Source of the DNA: Azolla caroliniana
Lineage: Eukaryota > Plantae > Polypodiophyta
Reading direction: 5' to 3'
NCBI GenBank assembly: GCA_043228905.1
Contig: JBHGNT010000013.1
Span: 13,268,001-13,332,000, forward strand
Length of the DNA stretch: 64,000 nt
Positions 1-57,451 of this stretch are shown in pieces. How positions within the stretch are numbered: position 1 is the stretch's first letter; each line of letters opens with the position of its first letter. The notes under the pieces were generated by a model. It saw only the letters and a program-made list of their open reading frames with translations. It did no database searches and was not told the DNA's origin. The position numbers and the translations under genes are program-made.

Positions 1-3000
1 TGATGATGATCTTACCTGTAGTGGGCTGAAACAATCAATAACCTTTGCTTTCTTTGCTGTAGCCAACAAAGATGCATTTTGTTGCTTTGTCTTGAAGCTT
101 ATGGCGTTGCTGTGGTGGCACAAATGCATAAGCCAAACTTCCAAAGATTCTCATGTGTCCAACATTTGGCTTGTGACCAGTTCAAGCCTTATACGGAGTG
201 ATAGTTGTTATTGCTTTTGTGGGGCATCTATTCAAAACATAGTTTGCACACATTACAGCTTCCAACCAAAACTTATGAGGTAGCTTCTTACCGTTGAGCA
301 TGCATCTTGCCATCTCCATGAGAGATCTATTCTTTCTCTCAGCCAAACCATTTTGTTGTGGTGTGTATGGAGTGGTGCATTGATGAATAATACCTCTATC
401 CTTCAAGAAAACATTGAACTCGTGAGACATGTACTCACCCCTCTATCGGTGCGAAGAGTAATGAGTTTGTGACCGCTAAGATTTTCAGCAAGGTGTAAGA
501 ATTCTTTGAAGCATGAAAAGACATTAGATTTCTCCTTCAAAGGATATACCCAAGTGTGTCGGGTAGCATCATCAATGAATGTAAGAAAATAAAGATAACC
601 TCCAATTGATGGTGTCCTCATTGGGCCACATACATCACTATGTACAAGTTGAAGCTTGTGTGTTGCCAAAACATTTGCATCTTTTGGAAATGAAAACCTG
701 TGCATCTTCCCTAGAATACAGCCCTCACAAACATGATTAGATGGTACATGAATGGAAGGAAGATTGCATACCATGTCATGCTTGCTAAGCCGTGCAAGGC
801 TACTGAAATTTAAATGGCCGAACCAAGCATGCCATAGTTCAGATTTGCTTTGTGTTTGGGCATCCACCGCTAATGCATTTTGGTCATCAAATTTCTGATA
901 TATGTCAAGCTTGTAAAGGTTGTTGAACAAACTACCTGTTATGACAATGATATCGCCCTTTGTACGATCATGTATTGTGCATTTGTCATAGAGAAAATGG
1001 ACAGGGTATCCATGCATAGCAATGGCAGAAACAGAAAGAAGGTTTTTCTTTATGCCAGGGACATAGAGAACATTGTTCAAGGTGACTACATCCCCATTGA
1101 CAGCTGTAATATGAACTTGACCAATGCCTTTTATGGTGTAAGAAGCATTATTGGCACAAGTAACGGTGCCCGCCTTATGACAAGCTTCTTCAAGCGTGAC
1201 AAAGAAATTTTTGCAAGAAGTTATGTGTTTAGAAGCACCGCTATCAAAATACCAATCATCTGTAGTCACTTACTGATAAACATACATCATCCTTTGAGGG
1301 ATCATACATTGTATGTATCGAGAATGCCCACTCATGTTGAGCAATGTGTGCTTCTACCTTCGTACCAGTAGAGGTGGTGACATTAAGACTAGACTGCTTT
1401 TTCTTCTCTTCACTAGCTTTCCTTTTTTGACACTCGCTAATGTCATGGCCTGGTTTACAACAGTAATTGCACCTTATCTTCTTCTTCTCATCATGGAAAG
1501 TCGAGGCATCATTGCCTTTAGAAGAAAGGTTACTTTGTTTTCGTCCTTGTTGGCCTTTGAACTTGGAAGAGGTAACAAAGGCTTGATCACCACTATTAAG
1601 AACATCTCGATTTGCTCGAGACTGAAATTCCTGTAAGAGAAGGGAGATTAGCTCATCAAAACTGAAGCTCTCTTTACCTCTTGTAAGAAGCCTTATTGTT
1701 GTGGCGAAGCCTTGATATGAATCCGGAAGCGCGGCAAGAACTTTAGAAACGAGTTGCTTGTCTGAAATCACTTCATCAATGTTGAGTAGTTGTTCTTTGA
1801 AGTCCTTGATTTTTGTTAAGAATGCATCCATGGATTCACCTTCTTGCATCCTTGTTTCTTCAAGTTGTCGCTTAAGCATAGCGACTCTTGCTTCATTCCT
1901 TTGAGCATACAAATTCTTTAACACATCCCATGCACTTTTTGAAGTCATGCAAGATTGGATATGTGGAACAATGTGACGTTTGACCGATAGTGCGATGAGA
2001 GCATGGGCTTGAGCATCCTTACCATCCCACTTAAGTTGTGAAGAGGTGGGTAGTTGAGTGGAGCTTGAAGCATTGTCTGCGTCAGTTGTTCCTGAACGGG
2101 AGGGAGAGTTTGGAGAAGAACTCAAAGATGGACGTTCATCGGATCCGATGACAATGTCCCATAGCTGCTTTGCTACTAGTACATGTCTCATCATGTACGC
2201 CCACATAGGATAGTTAGTACCATCCAACTTGTCTTCAACATTAAGCATACTAAAAATATTAGTTTGCTCAGCCATTGAAGAAGCAAGAAATATGGATTAG
2301 ATATTGCAATACTTGGTGGTTATATTCACCAAAATGTACTGAAGCAATATAATATTGAGGCAATAGATGAGAGATAAGAGTTACTCTGATGTGCTGAAAA
2401 CTAATTTTGTTGTGGTAAAAATTGGTTGCTGCAATTGCTGTGCAGTTAGGGTTTGAGACTGCTACAAATTTTGTTTTGACTATACCTCCAAAAACAAAAA
2501 ACCGATTTGGGTGTGCAAGTAGTCAGAAGAATCAGCTTGTAATCTAATTTCTAAAAATGGGAAAATAGAGAAAGATCGCCTTTGCTGTAGCTTTTTGTTC
2601 ACACTTTTGTTGCTGTACATGGAGAGGTTTGATGTCTTCTTAGGTGGGAAGAGATAAACAGAAAGATCTATGTATGCCTATTTGGAAGGATAGGATAGAG
2701 AAAGTAACCTAAACCTGCTCTGATACCATGTAGAAAAATCAGGGATCTAGACTAACTCTCATACAGCAAGATCACTTAGAAGACTTAAGAGAATATTAGT
2801 AGATTAGGGAAAAACGAGCACTACTATTACAAAGATGTAGAATCTGGTTTATATAACCAGTTTCTACAAGACTTATAGACCCAACAGTTACTATATTAGG
2901 TTCACACTATTATAGCTATATTCACACCTAACAACTACCTAACTAGGTTCAAACTATTCTAAGTGTGTTCACACCCAACAGTTACTTAACTGGGTTCACA

Positions 3001-3125
3001 CTATTATAACAATGTTCACACCAAAGCTTTCATAGGATACACATTAAGTGTAACAAGTACCCTTCTACCCATCATCTTCAAACTTAGATATACACAAGAT
3101 ACCCCTAGGATAAGAATTCACGACA
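1..3125 (-). mobile_element. Ty1/copia LTR retrotransposon, 5' part (LTR 2729-3125, iMet PBS, gag-PR-IN), degenerate, continues beyond window start
   Basis: LTR bounded by TG...CA; PBS TGGTATCAGAGC at 2728-2717; gag ORF 2275-1256 with CCHC knuckle; WYFDSGAS protease, LWH..FGH GAG-pre-integrase, HSDVCGP/DDATR/PQQNGLAERKNR integrase; frameshifts near 1265 and 435 and a stop at 182. Confidence 0.95.
182..2275 (-). pseudogene. Copia gag-pol polyprotein, broken into three ORFs
   Basis: ORFs 1256-2275, 403-1269 and 182-430 are consecutive parts of one copia polyprotein. Confidence 0.9.
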
Positions 3126-3600
3126 TGCGAAAAAAATCTTCATGTGAACTTACTCATAGATCCCCAACTATTCAAAATACCCAAACCCTTTATATGCTGG
3201 AGTAAGTCCAAGTCCGTTCACTCTTTTCTTGTCAAAATGAAATATAAAAGATCATCCCCAAATCCTCTTACTTAATACTATACACATACTTATAATCCCC
3301 CTCTTTTCATAGCCCACCCCCACTTATTACTTACCATACAGGTACTTATAACCGCTCACTTTTCATAGCCCACCCCCACTTATTATTTATCAATTCATTG
3401 CCTATCACTATCCCTCACTAACTCGTATTCCATCTCTGCCCCTTCTCTCCCTATATAAACCTATACCCATGTTGTTAATGACCTTTGCACTAATGAGCTC
3501 ACTCTAGAGCGAAACTAGTTTGCATAAGGTCTTTCCTCGTAATGAAATTTTCTTGAGTTTCTCTCTCTATCTCTACTCTCACTCTCAATTGCCATAGTAC
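3126..3600 (+). mobile_element. 3' end of a putative Penelope-like retroelement (RT thumb tail, 3' UTR duplication, hammerhead); right boundary approximate
   Basis: Open frame 3126-3275 (EKNLHVNLLIDPQLFKIPKPFICWSKSKSVHSFLVKMKYKR...stop) resembles the PLE post-RT motif; ~56-bp direct duplication at 3287-3385; TATA at 3452; hammerhead at 3480-3531. Confidence 0.6.
3480..3531 (+). ncRNA. Minimal type I hammerhead ribozyme (PLE-type) with a G5A core substitution
   Basis: Stem I GACCTT-TGCA/TGCA(T)AAGGTC; core CTAATGA; stem II GCTC-actcta-GAGC; GAAA; stem III A-[CTAG]-T; cleavage triplet GTT. Confidence 0.85.
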
Positions 3601-4257
3601 GTAATATATTGAATGCATTGGCAAACTTTTTTTCATACAAGTGCAAACAAATGCGTATGTTATCACAACATTCTTATGTTTTTTTTTACACTTTTTACCT
3701 TATAATAAATAATGAAACAAAAGTATGGTATTTACCATACTTCAAGGGTGGTTACCATACTCGAATGATTGAAACATTCTGGAATGCGAATGCATGTATG
3801 GTACGTATAGTTTATATTATGATCCATACATCATCACATTAGTTGGAGATAGAGATATGAGGGTGAGGGGTGTATGTTCCAAGCAAAGAATGTCTTTGTT
3901 ATGCCTTACAGAGCCAAAGCTTGAGGAGCACTACCTTGTTGCTGTGCAATGTACTTTGAGATTGGAGGATGCTTCCACTATCTCTCTAGGGAGAGATTTT
4001 TGTAGTTCTTATTACTTGTCATCTGTAGATTTATTGAATCTAGAGTCAACGAGGTGCATACAAAGACAAATGTTAGAGTTCTTCTGAAGGATGTGTCCAG
4101 TGCATTTTGCGAGCACAACTAGCACCTCAAAGGGATATTGCTTGACTAGCTAGTGCATTTTGTTTACCTTAGATGCATAGTGATTAACTTATTATCACAT
4201 AGAAGGTGTAGTAAGATGTAGCCCGCATTGGAACACATAGTAGTGTTGCCCAATGTG

Positions 4258-5587
4258 AAAAAATCTTGGAAATGCTAAGCACATTTATGGGTTAAGAATC
4301 AGTCAGAACAGGCAAAAGAAGTTACTATTTGTGTCCCAAGAGATGTACGTTGAGAAGGTATTGGAAAGATTTCAGATGACTAATGCAAAGCCATATTCAA
4401 TGCCTCTTAAATCACAAGAAAAGCTTTAAAAGCACATTATCACAAAGACAAAGGAAACAGAAAAAATGCAGGCTATCTTTTATGGAAAAATAAATGCAGG
4501 CTATCCCATATGCCTCAGCTTGTGGGTCATTGATGTATGCAATGGTATCAACATGACCTGATATTGCTAATGCAGTAGGAGTAGTAAGCAAATTTATGAG
4601 TCAACCTAGACTAAGCCATTGGACTGTAATCAACTCTATCCTTAGATATCTCAAAGGCAGTAAGGAAAAAAACATTTGTTATGGCAAAGGGGACTTGAAT
4701 CTTCATGACTAGTGTGATTCTGATTTGGTTGGAGATGTAGACATTTGGCTACATCTATACCCTTGCAGGGGGAGCTATTTCTTGGTGTTCAAGGCTGCAA
4801 CGAATCAATGCACTCTCTACTACAGAAGCTGAATATATCTCAGCTACAGAGGCTTCAAAGGAGGCCATTTGGTTACCTCTCTTGGACTCCCAAAGCAAAT
4901 TCTAGTCCTACATTGTGATAACCAAAGTCCCATATGTTTGGCAAACAACCCTGTTTACCATGCACGGACCAAACATATTGATATTTACTATCACTTCATT
5001 AGAGATGATAGACAATGGTCAAATCCAATGGATAAGGATTGATACCACTAAGAATCCGAAAGATTGTTTAACAAATTGTTTATTAAAGACAGTTCTCCAA
5101 CAATGACTTGAGCGAGTGGGAGTTGTCCAGTAGAGTAACCTAGCTCCTTTAAGTGGGAGGTTGTTGGGATTTAAGGTCCTTTAGGTTTCTCTAACTAAAC
5201 TAGAAAAACGTTTTTATATTATTTAATATTTTCTAATTTTTGTTAAAGTTATACATTCTCGTTTTCATAACTGTACTACAACTTTTAAAAGAATATTTTG
5301 TAGTTTGAATGGGATCCTTGAATAAGATTCCCACTCAACATTAAATAGGTATTTATGAGACCACGACTTAGTTTTCACATCAGCATTTAAAGCTCTTCTT
5401 CTAAGAGCATATCCTATGTATCTTGGATAGCACATATATGTGTTTGTGAGCACTCCTACCTTGTATATTTTTGAAGTGAAGTGTTTTGCAGAACTGCTTC
5501 TACTTTTTTAATCCCTCCAATCTGTTAAACCCTATAATTGTTTTTAGTTTCTATATCTCTGTCTTAAGATATTTCAGAAAACTGTCA
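4258..5587 (+). mobile_element. Degenerate Ty1/copia RT-RNase H, PPT and 3' LTR remnant (right boundary approximate)
   Basis: [53 protein letters not shown]; PPT AAGTGGGAGG at 5151-5160, then TGTTG at 5162. Confidence 0.85.
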
Positions 5588-5589
5588 TT

Positions 5590-6170
5590 CTATCTACTAC
5601 TTACATATCATATTATATGTTGATGACCTTCTAATTACAGGGTCCCTTGCTTCTAAAATCAAGGAGCTCTGCACTGACCACAAAACCACATTTGAAGTGA
5701 CTGATTTAGGACTTCTCCATTACTTCTTAGGCCTGGAGGTCTAGGTCTATCAATCACATGGTGGTATCTTCCTCAGCCAACAGAAGTAGCTTAGATAGCT
5801 CCTTGAGACATGGCGTGTCAAATTGCAGGCCACTCTTATGTCCATGGATCCAAACTCAAAGCTATCGTGTGAACATGATTCTCCCATATTTGAAGATATC
5901 ACAAAACATAGAAGGTTAATTAGTCTCTTCTTCACTTAACTTATACTTGGCTTGATTTGTCCTAAAGTGTAAGTATTCTTAGCTAATTCATTGGCAAGCA
6001 GCTATTCGTGTTCTTAGGTATTTGGCCAACACTCTCGAATATGGTCTCTTTTAGGGCGGAATTGAGCTTGTTGGCTTCTCATACGCTGATTGGGCAGGTG
6101 ATATTGATTCTAGAAGGTTCACATCTGGATATTGTTGTTTTAGGCTCAGGTTTAATTTATTGGAAATCAA
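5590..6170 (+). mobile_element. Second Ty1/copia RT to RNase H fragment
   Basis: LYVDDLLITG..MTDLGLLHYFLGLEV-like and ADWAGDIDSRRFTSGY..LGSGLIYWKSK motifs. Confidence 0.85.
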
Positions 6171-7532
6171 ATTGATGGTAATGGTGGGTGACAATCAAGA
6201 CACACTTCTAACAGATTCCCAGCGGAAAGGTATGTTTTTGTGAATTCTCATACACTGATTGGGCAGGTGATATTGATTCTAGAAGGTTCACATCTGGATA
6301 TTGTTGTGTTAGGCTCAGGTTTAATTTATTGGAAATCAAATTGATGGTAATGGTGGGTGACAATCAAGACACACTTCTAACAGATTCCCAGCGGAAAGGT
6401 ATGTTTTTGTGAATTCTCATACACTGATTGGGCAGGTGATATTGATTCTAGAAGGTTCACATCTGGATATTGTTGTGTTAGGCTCAGGTTTAATTTATTG
6501 GAAATCAAATTGATGGTAATGGTGGGTGATAATCAGATTCCCAGCGGAAAGGTATGTTTTTGTGAATTCTCATACACTGATTGGGCAGGTGATATTGATT
6601 CTAGAAGGTTCACATCTGGATATTGTTGTTTTAGGCTCAGGTTTAATTTATTGGAAATCAAATTGATGGTAATGGTGGGTGACAATCAAGACACACTTCT
6701 AACAGATTCCCAGCGGAAAGGTATGTTTTTGTGAATTCTCATACACTGATTGGGCAGGTGATATTGATTCTAGAAGGTTCACATCTGGATATTGTTGTGT
6801 TAGGCTCAGGTTTAATTTATTGGAAATCAAATTGATGGTAATGGTGGGTGATAATCAGATTCCCAGCGGAAAGGTATGTTTTTGTGAATTCTCATACACT
6901 GATTGGGCAGGTGATATTGATTCTAGAAGGTTCACATCTGGATATTGTTGTGTTAGGCTCAGGTTTAATTTATTGGAAATCAAATTGATGGTAATGGTGG
7001 GTGATAATCAGATTCCCAGCGGAAAGGTATGTTTTTGTGAATTCTCATACACTGATTGGGCAGGTGATATTGATTCTAGAAGGTTCACATCTGGATATTG
7101 TTGTTTTAGGCTCAGGTTTAATTTATTGGAAATCAAATTGATGGTAATGGTGGGTGACAATCAAGACACACTTCTAACAGATTCCCAGCGGAAAGGTATG
7201 TTTTTGTGAATTCTCATACACTGATTGGGCAGGTGATATTGATTCTAGAAGGTTCACATCTGGATATTGTTGTGTTAGGCTCAGGTTTAATTTATTGGAA
7301 ATCAAATTGATGGTAATGGTGGGTGATAATCAGATTCCCAGCGGAAAGGTATGTTTTTGTGAATTCTCATACACTGATTGGGCAGGTGATATTGATTCTA
7401 GAAGGTTCACATCTGGATATTGTTGTGTTAGGCTCAGGTTTAATTTATTGGAAATCAAATTGATGGTAATGGTGGGTGATAATCAAGACACACTTCTAAC
7501 AGATTCCCAGTGGAAAGGTATGTTTTTGTGAA
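6076..7532 (+). repeat. Tandem array of 9 units (5 x 169 bp, 4 x 153 bp), chimeric Copia RNase H / WD40 exon-intron monomer
   Basis: Units start at 6076, 6245, 6414, 6567, 6736, 6889, 7042, 7211, 7364; near-identical apart from a 16-bp indel and a few SNPs. Confidence 0.97.
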
Positions 7533-7746
7533 TAAAAATTGTACTTCAACCACACTGGAGTAAATATGATACTTGAAGTTGCATTACTAAAATCTTGCTG
7601 GAATGTTTAGGTCTTGGCAACGCTGAAAGGTCATCTAGACTACTCTTTTGGCTCAGCATGGCATCCTGATCAGAATCAAGACACTTCCTGCAGACTCTGG
7701 GATGTGAGGAATTTGAGCTCTTCACTTGCAGTTCTAAATGGTAGCC
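7457..7746 (+). pseudogene. Fragment of a WD40-repeat protein gene (C2A9.03/DUF2415-like): two partial exons and one intron
   Basis: KLMVMVGDNQDTLLTDSQ(S)GK, GT-AG intron 7518-7610, then VLATLKGHLDYSFGSAWHPD--NQDTSCRLWDVRNLSSSLAVL; frameshift and internal deletion. Confidence 0.8.
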
Positions 7747-26625: not shown

Positions 26626-28870
26626 TGTTATGTACACATAACGTTAGTGAGGGTAGGTCACTAATATTTACATTAGTGAAGGGTATGTTTACTAATGTTA
26701 AAAAGACGGCTAATTTGAATGGATAGAAGGAATGACAGGTGCATGCACTATCATGATTTGGGCAACCAATGAATGATTTAGACCCTTTTCCTTTTAGAAA
26801 GGCACATCTATTCAAGGGGCCTAGGAAAAGGTATAAATATGAGGCTTAGCTAACCTCATAAGCACATTACGTCGGAAGGTTGTTGTCTTAGACACCGGTG
26901 GTGCGGGCGAGGCTTTCATCTCGACGATCGTGTTTATCTCTTCCAAGGTATTAGTCATCCGGATATCCGGCGGTATGGGACGTCAGTGGTAGGTTGGTTA
27001 TGTCTAGATTGTAGCTCAGGGGTGATTGGGTGAAATGGGTTCTTCTATCCAATCTATTTTCCGTCTTTTACTTTACTTTGGTCTATTGATTAGTAATAGA
27101 CTCTTAATAATGGTATCAGAACCAAGTTTTGATCCTGGGACCTGTGGATTATGGGCCCACCACGCTTCTACTGCGCGACAATGACAGCTCGAGGGACATT
27201 ACGTCGACAATCCAATGACACTCTTGACCGTGACTCCAAGAAACTGGACCTCTTCTGTGCATATTGCAAGAAGCGGGGCCGCACAAAGGATACTTATCAT
27301 CGTCTTGAGAGGAAGTCAATGAACACCCCTCCTCAAGACAAATCTACGAGTCACACAGGTGAGTCTTTTGATGTTGTTGAGGTTCATACCAATCACTTAA
27401 GTTCATGTGAATGCACTTTTCCTTCACATTTACTTGGACCTAATGATTTACTCCGAGCAGTCAGGTATATCAATGGAACACAAGCACCTTTCTTGTTTGA
27501 TTCCGGTAGTTCTCACAATTTTCTTAATGGTCACTTTGTGCAGCAAATGGAACTCCACATAAACGCAAGTGATCATATCTATTAAGTTCACATGGCAAAT
27601 GGAAGTGTTCAATACATCAATGGCATTGTTTGTCAACTGCCAATTCAAATAGATGCCTATTTGGTGAAGCTAGACTTTCATGTTATGAAACTACAATCCG
27701 TAGATGTCATTTTAGGATACCCTTGGTTTTTTAATAAAAACCCTTCTTTGTTCATTGATTGGGTTAATCACTCAATCACATTTGAACTTAATAATTGTAA
27801 ACATTTTATTCAATGTTCCAAACTTCCTTCTCGTTCACTTGTGTCTTCTAAATCTTTAAGTTAGTATTCTAGTTCATTAATTTATTTGTGTAATTGATCC
27901 TGCGCTTCAATTTTATTATTTTAATATTGATGCCACACAATTACCACATTATGAACAACGATTACTCAACCCTATTTTAGACGATTTTTAAGATGTGTTT
28001 CCTAATGAATTGCCGCTTACTTTACCACCAAGATTTTTAGACAACAGTCATGCCAAGATTTGAACTCTTGACAATTTGTATTGTAGTCAAGTGTTATGTT
28101 CTAACCAATACACCCAAGTACATGATCATGTTATGTATATGTCCGTAGATTATTAGTAGAATATCCATTTCAAGTTCTAGTAGTTTGTAGAAAGTTCTAG
28201 AACTAGAAGGTTCTAGAGGAATCTAGAATATTCTAATGCATGTACTTCGACTCATAGTATAAATACTTGTAACCTCCGTGGTCCCTTTCAAGGGAATCAA
28301 GGCAAGTCATTGACACATCAATATAGTGTTCTCATTTCGCCTCATCTTTGTCTTCTTGATCTTTAGTTCTATCTTCATGCCCTCATGTCGCTCACAACAT
28401 CTAGAATTCCTAGCTTCGTCACGCTCCAAGTTCATCCGTCGCTTGTAACCCCATCATCCGTGCTTCGTCATAGTCCGCGCTTGGTTATCATCAGATTGAC
28501 TTACGAACAGGTTATCATTAGATTCGCATTGCCAAGGATGATATTCCTAAAACCATTATGAGTTTTTAGTCATGCCTTTCGGATTGACTAATGCTCCAGC
28601 CACATTCCAACAAGGGATGAATGACGTTTTCCGAGATTAACTCAGTGATTTTGTTGTCGTCATCTTGGATGATAGTTTGGATATATAGTTGTACCTTGCA
28701 AGATCATGTTCAACATGTTCGATTTGGTTTGGACAAGTTGCGTGACAACCCTTTCTATGCAAAACATTCAAAATGTGATTTTTTCCAAAAATCTATTGTG
28801 TACTTAGGTCATTTAATTACGGAAAATGGTATTGAAATTGAACCTTCTCGTATTGAAACGTTGTTTTTTT
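26626..28870 (+). mobile_element. Degenerate Ty3/gypsy element (LTR 26626-27109, iMet PBS at 27111, gag/PR/RT remnants)
   Basis: TGTTA...TAATA then TGGTATCAGA; CAYCKKRG knuckle, FLFDSGSSHNF, VILGYPW, IDLRTGYH, MPFGLTNAPATFQ. Confidence 0.85.
28092..28490 (+). mobile_element. Probable solo LTR nested in the gypsy remnant
   Basis: TG...CA ends, TATAAATA at about 28258, repeated TTCTAG motifs; flanks TCAAG/TCAGA are an imperfect TSD. Confidence 0.65.
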
Positions 28871-56280: not shown

Positions 56281-57451
56281 AGTTATGACACAATTCATTG
56301 GATTGATTATAAACTCTCTCTCTTGAGCTATCATCTATATAATGAATGTATCAATCAAATATTGGTGCAGTTTCTTCATTGTTTCATCAACTACTAACAA
56401 GATGATTGGGTTTACTATTTGCACTTTGTAGATTTTGCTTACAACAATATGATTCACTCTTCTACTATATATACTCCATTCTTTGTCAACATAGGATCTA
56501 ATCCCATTGCATGATGCTTGAACATTTTGAATTCTCGAAAAATCTCATTGTTGAGGATTGTCTACTTTAACTCCAAGAGATTCACATTATTCTTTCTTAC
56601 CATTTAGATGATGCTCAAGCCAAATTTACGAAATTTGTAGATTTTCATCATATTGACTCATCACCATACGAACCTAAGTTATTGACTTGGGGATTGCATG
56701 TGGCTCTTACGAAGTACTATAAAGACAACCATGCCTTGCCATAACTTTGATTGTGAATGTCTTGGTCCACACATAAAGGAGTATTTCCTTGAATCCCCTC
56801 CACTTGGGAGGATTTCATCGAGTCATTATTATGAGCCATGATCTCTTACTAGACAAATGAAGTTGCATTTCGTTTTCAATCTCCCTCACCACACTTGTAT
56901 TCACCTAGTGTTATGTGTAACACTTTTGGAGCTTTATACTTCAAGTTTTATTCTGGATTATGTTGTTCCTCCACCTCTTGTTGAGCCTATTGATGGTATA
57001 GAATACTAGTTAGAAACCATTTTGGACTCCACATTTGTGCACAACAAATTATATTATTTGGTTAATTAGTTAGGATATACACCTAATGACTGAACATGGA
57101 AGTTTGCCAAACATCCCAATGATGTCACACAACTCGTAGGTGGAATTTCATCATTGATATCTAAATAAGACAATTGGTAATTTATGCATTCCGACTCATG
57201 TAACTTGTCATGAAAATAGAGTAGGGTAAAGATTTGAAGTCATGACCTCTTGGAAGATTATATGTAGCCTTAACCATAAGGAGATACCATATAGTTATTC
57301 TATAATCTAGAGAATATACATAATATTATGAAATGTCGCTACATTGCACATGCTAATGTATGATCGCCGAATGCCAAGTGGTGATCATGCATGACTTCAA
57401 GGTGACAAGCATATGCACATGTGTAAACCATGCTATATAAGCATGTGTTAT

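Follow-up and report, generated by a model that had tools for sequence, protein, structure and literature searches.

Endonuclease-deficient Penelope-like elements (PLEs) of Selaginella reportedly trace back to the work of Gladyshev and Arkhipova in 2007. Among plants, hammerhead ribozymes of PLEs that lack an endonuclease have been described only for Selaginella, type I motifs having been located in the pseudo-LTRs of the endonuclease-deficient PLEs of S. moellendorffii (Cervera and de la Pena 2014, PMC4209133). The same authors compare the plant motifs with those of Schistosoma and human, as the canonical type I form, and use the term 'min-HHR' for motifs without any helix III. According to the part of that paper that draws on Forster et al. 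1988, a helix III as short as that of these motifs is insufficient to maintain the fold, which is achieved instead by two copies joined through a palindrome (PMC4209133). The role proposed for PLE hammerheads is the trimming of unit RNAs (PMC4209133, PMC6431247), a role called still unclear elsewhere (PMC8557442).

Two other groups of retroelements provide points of reference. Athena and Coprina PLEs and the rotifer Terminons have a reverse transcriptase (RT) devoid of GIY-YIG and a hammerhead close to the 3' end, form head-to-tail arrays and are frequently truncated at the 5' end; their hammerhead is followed by reverse-complement telomeric repeats, and copies reside at chromosome ends (PMC6431247, PMC8557442). 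Plant retrozymes, the best-known plant carriers of hammerheads, are small non-coding elements that bear type III motifs in both of their true LTRs, possess a primer-binding site and a polypurine tract, process repeat-derived RNA and give rise to circular RNAs (PMC5680766).

The locus considered here lies in a 64-kb stretch of plant DNA (the window) rich in retroelements, including LINE and gypsy elements, and also containing an AP2-domain gene. Based on its sequence relationships, the segment at about 3053-3588(+) is very probably a dead, 5'-truncated plant copy of the 3' end of a PLE lacking an endonuclease, with a hammerhead disabled by a G5A change, although the fragment could equally come from a non-coding derivative family instead of an autonomous element. 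The window copy is thus a decayed fossil of a kind already known, for which the nearest known case is the Selaginella PLE hammerhead.

Read from the letters of the window, the hammerhead motif occupies 52 bases (3480-3531, plus strand), comprising three helices, a mutated core and GAAA in the order GACCUUUGCA-CUAAUGA-GCUC-ACUCUA-GAGC-GAAA-CUAG-U-U-UGCAUAAGGUC. Helix I is formed by GACCUUUGCA (3480-3489) and UGCAUAAGGUC (3521-3531), which pair over 10 bp with a single bulged U at 3525, and it is the open helix, as in type I hammerheads. The core CUAAUGA (3490-3496), in which an A replaces G5 at 3492, leads into helix II, a 4-bp GCUC/GAGC stem (3497-3500 and 3507-3510) closed by the 6-nt loop ACUCUA. 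Then come GAAA (3511-3514) and the CUAG of loop III (3515-3518), which is closed by A15.1 (3514) and U16.1 (3519), this single A15.1-U16.1 pair being the whole of helix III. The predicted cleavage site lies between 3520 and 3521, immediately after U17 (3520), and the 8-nt palindrome AACTAGTT extends over 3513-3520.

The required G12-A13-A14, the A15.1-U16.1 pair and a base other than G at position 17 are all present, and these columns are invariant in the cassette alignment (A1), whereas the conserved core C3-U4-G5-A6-N7-G8-A9 is broken by the A at position 5. As far as sequence can tell, this places the window copy among the mutated descendants of hammerhead ribozymes and not among the functional members. 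An earlier note on this DNA had described the motif accurately with respect to its limits, cores, palindrome and single A-U pair; its label of 'minimal hammerhead' holds for the tiny helix III and the palindromic loop but not in the sense of 'min-HHR', and the motif, whose helix III is 1 bp long and whose loop is palindromic, is of the form called canonical type I in PMC4209133.

A motif this short might in principle be a chance hammerhead look-alike in AT-rich repeat DNA, without ribozyme ancestry, and the searches with general models lend some colour to that reading. Rfam at gathering thresholds reported no hammerhead in the window, and a permissive local Rfam search returned Hammerhead_HH9 (RF02275) alone, with 18.1 bits where the gathering score is 52 and with an E-value of about 10 when scaled to the whole window. 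The resemblance to HH9 includes an identical AUGAGCUC...AGAGCGAAAC and a short helix III; the differences lie in a helix I shorter than that of the model, a helix III of 1 bp against 3, and a plant PLE context in place of the amniote introns of the HH9 and amniote type I motifs. Under the same scoring, the published Selaginella PLE hammerhead obtains 41.5 bits, and the values for other intact relatives are 25.8-29.3 bits. Because these intact ribozymes also remain below the threshold, the Rfam models evidently do not cover the group, and the low score was not counted against the motif.

We also searched with a descriptor that allowed at most one core mismatch and demanded a helix II of 4-6 bp, GAAA, an A-U pair closing a palindromic loop, a base other than G at position 17 and a helix I of at least 3 bp. 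In its strict form it matched the 64-kb window only at 3480-3531 and had no matches in 150 simulated first-order-Markov windows of 64 kb. A looser descriptor added one poor look-alike at 56664(-), which is a point in favour of chance resemblance; that match was absent under the stricter descriptor and was discarded as a chance occurrence. The RNA of the motif folds better than its own shuffles (z = -3.5), and a covariance model built from the cassettes of relatives scores it at 80.7 bits. At least 14 homologous cassettes with an intact core and matching flanks, helices that covary across relatives and linkage of the motif to a PLE RT remnant leave chance resemblance with next to no probability, and we regard it as refuted by the homology results.

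These homologous cassettes came from a scan of public metagenome contigs with the pattern CTRATGAGCTC-N6-GAGCGAAACTAGT, in which either A or G was allowed at position 5. The scan yielded 14 loci, and CTGATGA was present in 14/14. Common to these loci and the window are the flanks of the motif, in which a CT-rich run is followed by CCTATATAAACC, a spacer of about 20 nt, the hammerhead and GGTCTTTC..TAATGAAA(A)TTTCTTGA. In the loci the module recurs every ~4.6-4.75 kb, head to tail, whereas the window holds one module only, as expected of a 5'-truncated copy. An intact unit of ~4.7 kb is ordered as a CT-rich microsatellite, a TATA box, the type I hammerhead, a short tail and leader, ORF1, about 100 nt, a 620-aa RT and a 3' UTR, and the TATA-hammerhead module acts as the pseudo-LTR of the head-to-tail units.

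ORF1 (617-850 aa), the large reading frame ending some 100 nt before the RT ORF (L012:2275-4443(-), L010:4411-6858(+) and L013:6391-8943(+)), has no Pfam match. The 620-aa ORF gave a weak RVT_1 match in Pfam, and a word search among precomputed domains returned PF00078, PF28514 and PF26215. Named relatives occur in Cryptomeria, Selaginella (38% identity) and Ginkgo, and the more distant ones are animal PLE proteins, some with an added GIY-YIG domain (PF01541); a protein atlas search agrees. No match to GIY-YIG PF01541 was obtained in either ORF of the loci, the close relatives carry none, and a PDB sequence search with the RT returned no matches. Judged by these relationships, the second ORF encodes a reverse transcriptase of the Penelope-like kind that lacks an endonuclease.

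BLAST aligned about 530 bp of the window, at ~3053-3588(+), to the head-to-tail retroelement units of the 14 metagenome contigs at 71-84% identity, with an aligned span of 3055-3562 or 3055-3585 and with DNA homology beginning at 3055 in all loci. The onset is abrupt and places the 5'-truncation junction at ~3052/3053. Immediately downstream lies the 3' remnant of the RT ORF (3053-3275, plus strand), corresponding to residues ~551-620 of 620. In tblastn searches the RT ORFs of L012, L010 and L013 matched it at 58-69% amino acid identity in two frames, residues 551-614 mapping to 3056-3248, which implies one frameshift, situated near 3130-3154. Only the last ~64-70 RT codons are retained, and the stop of the remnant (3273-3275) coincides with that of the 620-aa relatives. 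No other pieces of ORF1 or of the RT ORF were found in the window.

The remnant is followed by the 3' UTR (3276-3453, plus strand), which is homologous to the loci and includes a CT-rich stretch before the TATA box. A direct duplication of two 56-bp units (3257-3368) extends from the last part of the RT stub into the start of this UTR. The TATA box TATATAAA (3454-3461, plus strand), a putative promoter element, lies 26 nt upstream of the outermost pair of helix I, and the hammerhead itself begins 205 nt downstream of the RT stop. That position, together with the match of the whole 530-bp stretch to PLE units, bears out the proposal that the hammerhead is of Penelope type. Beyond the ribozyme, a conserved tail ending in ...TAATGAAATTTTCTTGAG (3532-3558, plus strand) aligns with the loci, of which L014 departs from the alignment right after CTTGAG, and a CT-rich run (3559-3588, plus strand) closes the homology, the BLAST alignments ending at 3562 or 3585. 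The 3' boundary of the fragment thus falls within 3558-3588, that is, between the end of the conserved ...TTCTTGAG and the end of the CT-rich run, and the sequence past ~3588 is unrelated to the loci. Because it retains no more than a frameshifted RT end, the 3' UTR and the TATA box, with the hammerhead and its short tail, the fragment is taken as a dead, 5'-truncated copy. It runs 38-68 nt past the cleavage site, so its template was not an RNA ending there.

The TATA-hammerhead module has (CT)n microsatellites or CT-rich runs on both sides, in the window (3420-3450 and 3559-3588) as in most loci. An insertion bias towards microsatellites has been reported for other PLEs (PMC8557442), and the CT-rich flanks of the module recall such a bias.

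The position of the fragment offers another reading, in which it would belong to a plant retrozyme, to another non-autonomous element of the LTR type, or to the LTR of the neighbouring minus-strand copia. That copia is represented by a gag-integrase region (182-2275, minus strand) and a tRNA-Met primer-binding site (2719-2730, minus strand), and the PLE fragment, interstitial among copia elements, adjoins or sits within its presumed 5' LTR region. A retrozyme origin would also suit what is known of plants, because retrozymes are the best-known hammerhead carriers there and the window motif, like theirs, is of a plant retroelement-borne kind (PMC5680766). The motif, however, is of type I, with helix I open, and is located in a PLE pseudo-LTR, unlike the type III motifs of retrozymes; it lies antisense to the copia element, and the fragment, over its 530 bp, is collinear with the 3' end of the RT and the pseudo-LTR of PLE units. 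Neither a second copy nor an LTR pair was detected in the window: no further copy of the motif appeared with up to three mismatches, or by self-BLAST of 2300-6100 against the window. The type of the motif, its strand, its PLE-derived flanks and the missing LTR pair all contradict this reading, which we consider highly unlikely.

Derivation from a PLE, by comparison, agrees with what is seen in Selaginella. The RT of the related loci belongs to the same lineage (LOC112343723 being 38% identical to it), and our covariance model finds a hammerhead ~40 nt after the RT stop in Selaginella (L015 595-643, GL377752.1). That motif is likewise of type I; its helix II measures 4 bp, and its helix III is 1 bp long and capped by a palindromic loop of 4 nt. 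It differs from the window motif in loop III (CCGG against CUAG) and in helix II (GUCC/GGAC against GCUC/GAGC), besides the G5A change and the truncation of the window copy, and in being adjoined by telomere-like repeats that are absent beside the window motif. The Athena, Coprina and Terminon elements depart further, for where they have telomeric repeats the window copy has CT-rich runs, and it is interstitial among copia elements; telomere-type repeats were not found anywhere in the 64-kb window, and neither mark of membership in that group, telomeric repeats by the hammerhead or a telomeric location, was found for the fragment, which counts against the PLE reading insofar as reverse-complement repeats of this type are usual in endonuclease-less PLEs that attach to telomeres.

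Hints of such repeats in the related loci were restricted to two of them. In the Selaginella locus (L015:560-595), telomere-like TAGGGTTAGGGTAG lies ~15 nt upstream of the hammerhead, and in L014 telomere-like CCTAAAACC follows the CTTGAG of the tail.

The covariance model, built from 15 cassettes, was applied to further loci with RT relatives (L017-L019, L020-L026, L028 and the Selaginella genome locus L015), and in nearly all of them it found a hammerhead from a few tens to ~800 nt downstream of the RT stop. Across the 17 distinct sequences assembled in this way, standard pairs fill 92.6% of the pair cells, compared with 79.4% in shuffled controls and 21-46% in controls with slid partners, in an alignment that was fitted to the model and so favours the structure. 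Compensatory changes on both sides were observed in 12 of 15 pairs, a level reached by none of 500 shuffles; stem covariation, whose absence had been named beforehand as grounds for rejecting the ribozyme, was accordingly found. Helix II covariation comes from the more distant loci only, as this helix was fixed by the search pattern in the closest 14. Across relatives, helix II occurs as GCUC/GAGC, GUCC/GGAC and GCCU/AGGC, and the distal part of helix I, GACC/GGUC in most loci, is GGUC/GACC in L003.

Loop III is palindromic in all sequences, with the four forms CUAG (that of the window), CAUG (L028), CCGG (Selaginella) and UGCA (L026), and the hexamer from 15.1 to 16.1 is always a palindrome, where a 4-nt loop would be palindromic by chance once in 16. 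Such invariable palindromy is a prediction of the published dimer model (PMC4209133). Cofolding of two copies also gives dimers, but so it does for any hairpin of this type; this result is compatible with the dimer model and was not counted as evidence for it.

The change at the core is private to the window copy. G5 was present in 16 of 18 model hits, the exceptions being the window copy and a decayed copy in L010 (9498-9558) that reads CTAACGA, with both G5A and U7C. The L010 copy shares just 68% identity with the window cassette, while the nearest relatives of the window, at 80-87% identity, all keep G5, from which we conclude that the two G5A changes are independent. With G5 also in every locus of the pattern scan, the expectations of a family consensus CUGAUGA and of a G5A change private to the window copy were both borne out. 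Changes at G5 reduce activity more than 100-fold, and G5A serves as an inactive control (PMC4075628, PMC6128941), so the assertion that G5A inactivates has good backing in the literature. By analogy with those ribozymes, the window ribozyme is almost certainly catalytically dead.

In dimeric hammerheads, a core mutation in one copy affects the cleavage site of the other copy. The active sites of such dimers are composites of two copies (Forster et al. 1988, in the account given by PMC4209133), and the window copy, whose TATA box, helices, GAAA, palindromic loop and U17 site are all intact, might then be not fully inert: if the fragment is transcribed from that TATA box, its own site could be cut through pairing with family RNA bearing an intact core, or its RNA could serve as a decoy for such RNAs. 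The window helix I nonetheless differs from that of the closest relatives, making intermolecular pairing imperfect, and the decay has a neutral look, with a frameshift and 25 private substitutions, so residual activity of this sort is quite unlikely.

The private substitutions, scored at columns where seven distinct relatives agree, also bear on how the predicted death of the ribozyme came about. The 25 changes consist of eight C>T, five G>A, two T>C, two A>G and eight transversions. Changes from GC to AT outnumber the reverse by 13 to 4, or per available base by 13/124 to 4/187 (about 5-fold), an excess that fits decay by cytosine deamination, which may be the cause of G5A too. The earlier note had proposed decay of the CHG-deamination type. 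Deamination is consistent both with a G>A transition in CTG/CAG and with the GC>AT bias, but specificity for CHG is no more than a possibility, since just 3 of these 13 changes fall in that context, among them the G5A site (a minus-strand CAG). Recurring independently in two decayed copies, G5A offers a small example of the death of a ribozyme once selection is lifted.

Upstream of the ribozyme, a TATA box was conserved in all plant endonuclease-less PLE loci examined (the window at 3454-3461 and L003, L004, L014, L017, L020, L024-L026 and L028), at 24-26 nt from the hammerhead in close relatives and at 36-50 nt in distant ones. In intact copies this box would start transcription at the ribozyme or just before it, and a transcript of a head-to-tail or pseudo-LTR arrangement would then carry a module close to its 5' end and another close to its 3' end. 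As a 1-bp helix III would be too weak alone, the palindromic loop could pair with that of a second copy and form an extended helix III, whereupon the paired hammerheads would cut after U17 and trim unit-length RNA from longer or tandem transcripts. For the window copy, the substitution of A for G5, which is a G>A transition in a CTG/CAG context, together with the reduction of the ORF to a frameshifted stub, would have left a fossil of such a system.

We tentatively propose, as a possibility with the odds against it, that in plant endonuclease-less PLEs the hammerhead is part of a fixed promoter-ribozyme module at the transcript start, that the changes of loop III from one palindrome to another are comparative evidence for cleavage by two copies, and that the pseudo-LTR may both start and trim the RNA. 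If such a module exists, the window copy is one fossil of an arrangement not described in this way for plants. Being a broken fragment with a ribozyme dead by prediction, the single copy matters little in itself and is of use chiefly as a way into a plant PLE family. The comparative set of 17 distinct motifs, with its covariation, obligate loop III palindromy and upstream TATA box, bears on the role of hammerheads in PLEs.

Other repeats were noted around the fragment. Just upstream of it, in the presumed copia LTR region, are three 47-bp tandem units (2879-3025). On its other side, a copia RNase H/pol fragment (4331-5100, plus strand) is followed by a satellite (6043-7630), a tandem array of 153/169-bp units whose ORFs resemble copia RNase H-derived sequence. 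Far from the fragment, at 27114-27185(-), a tRNA model matches weakly, with 31.3 bits for a gathering score of 29; the acceptor stem contains mismatches, and the site may be a pseudogene or a repeat derived from a tRNA.
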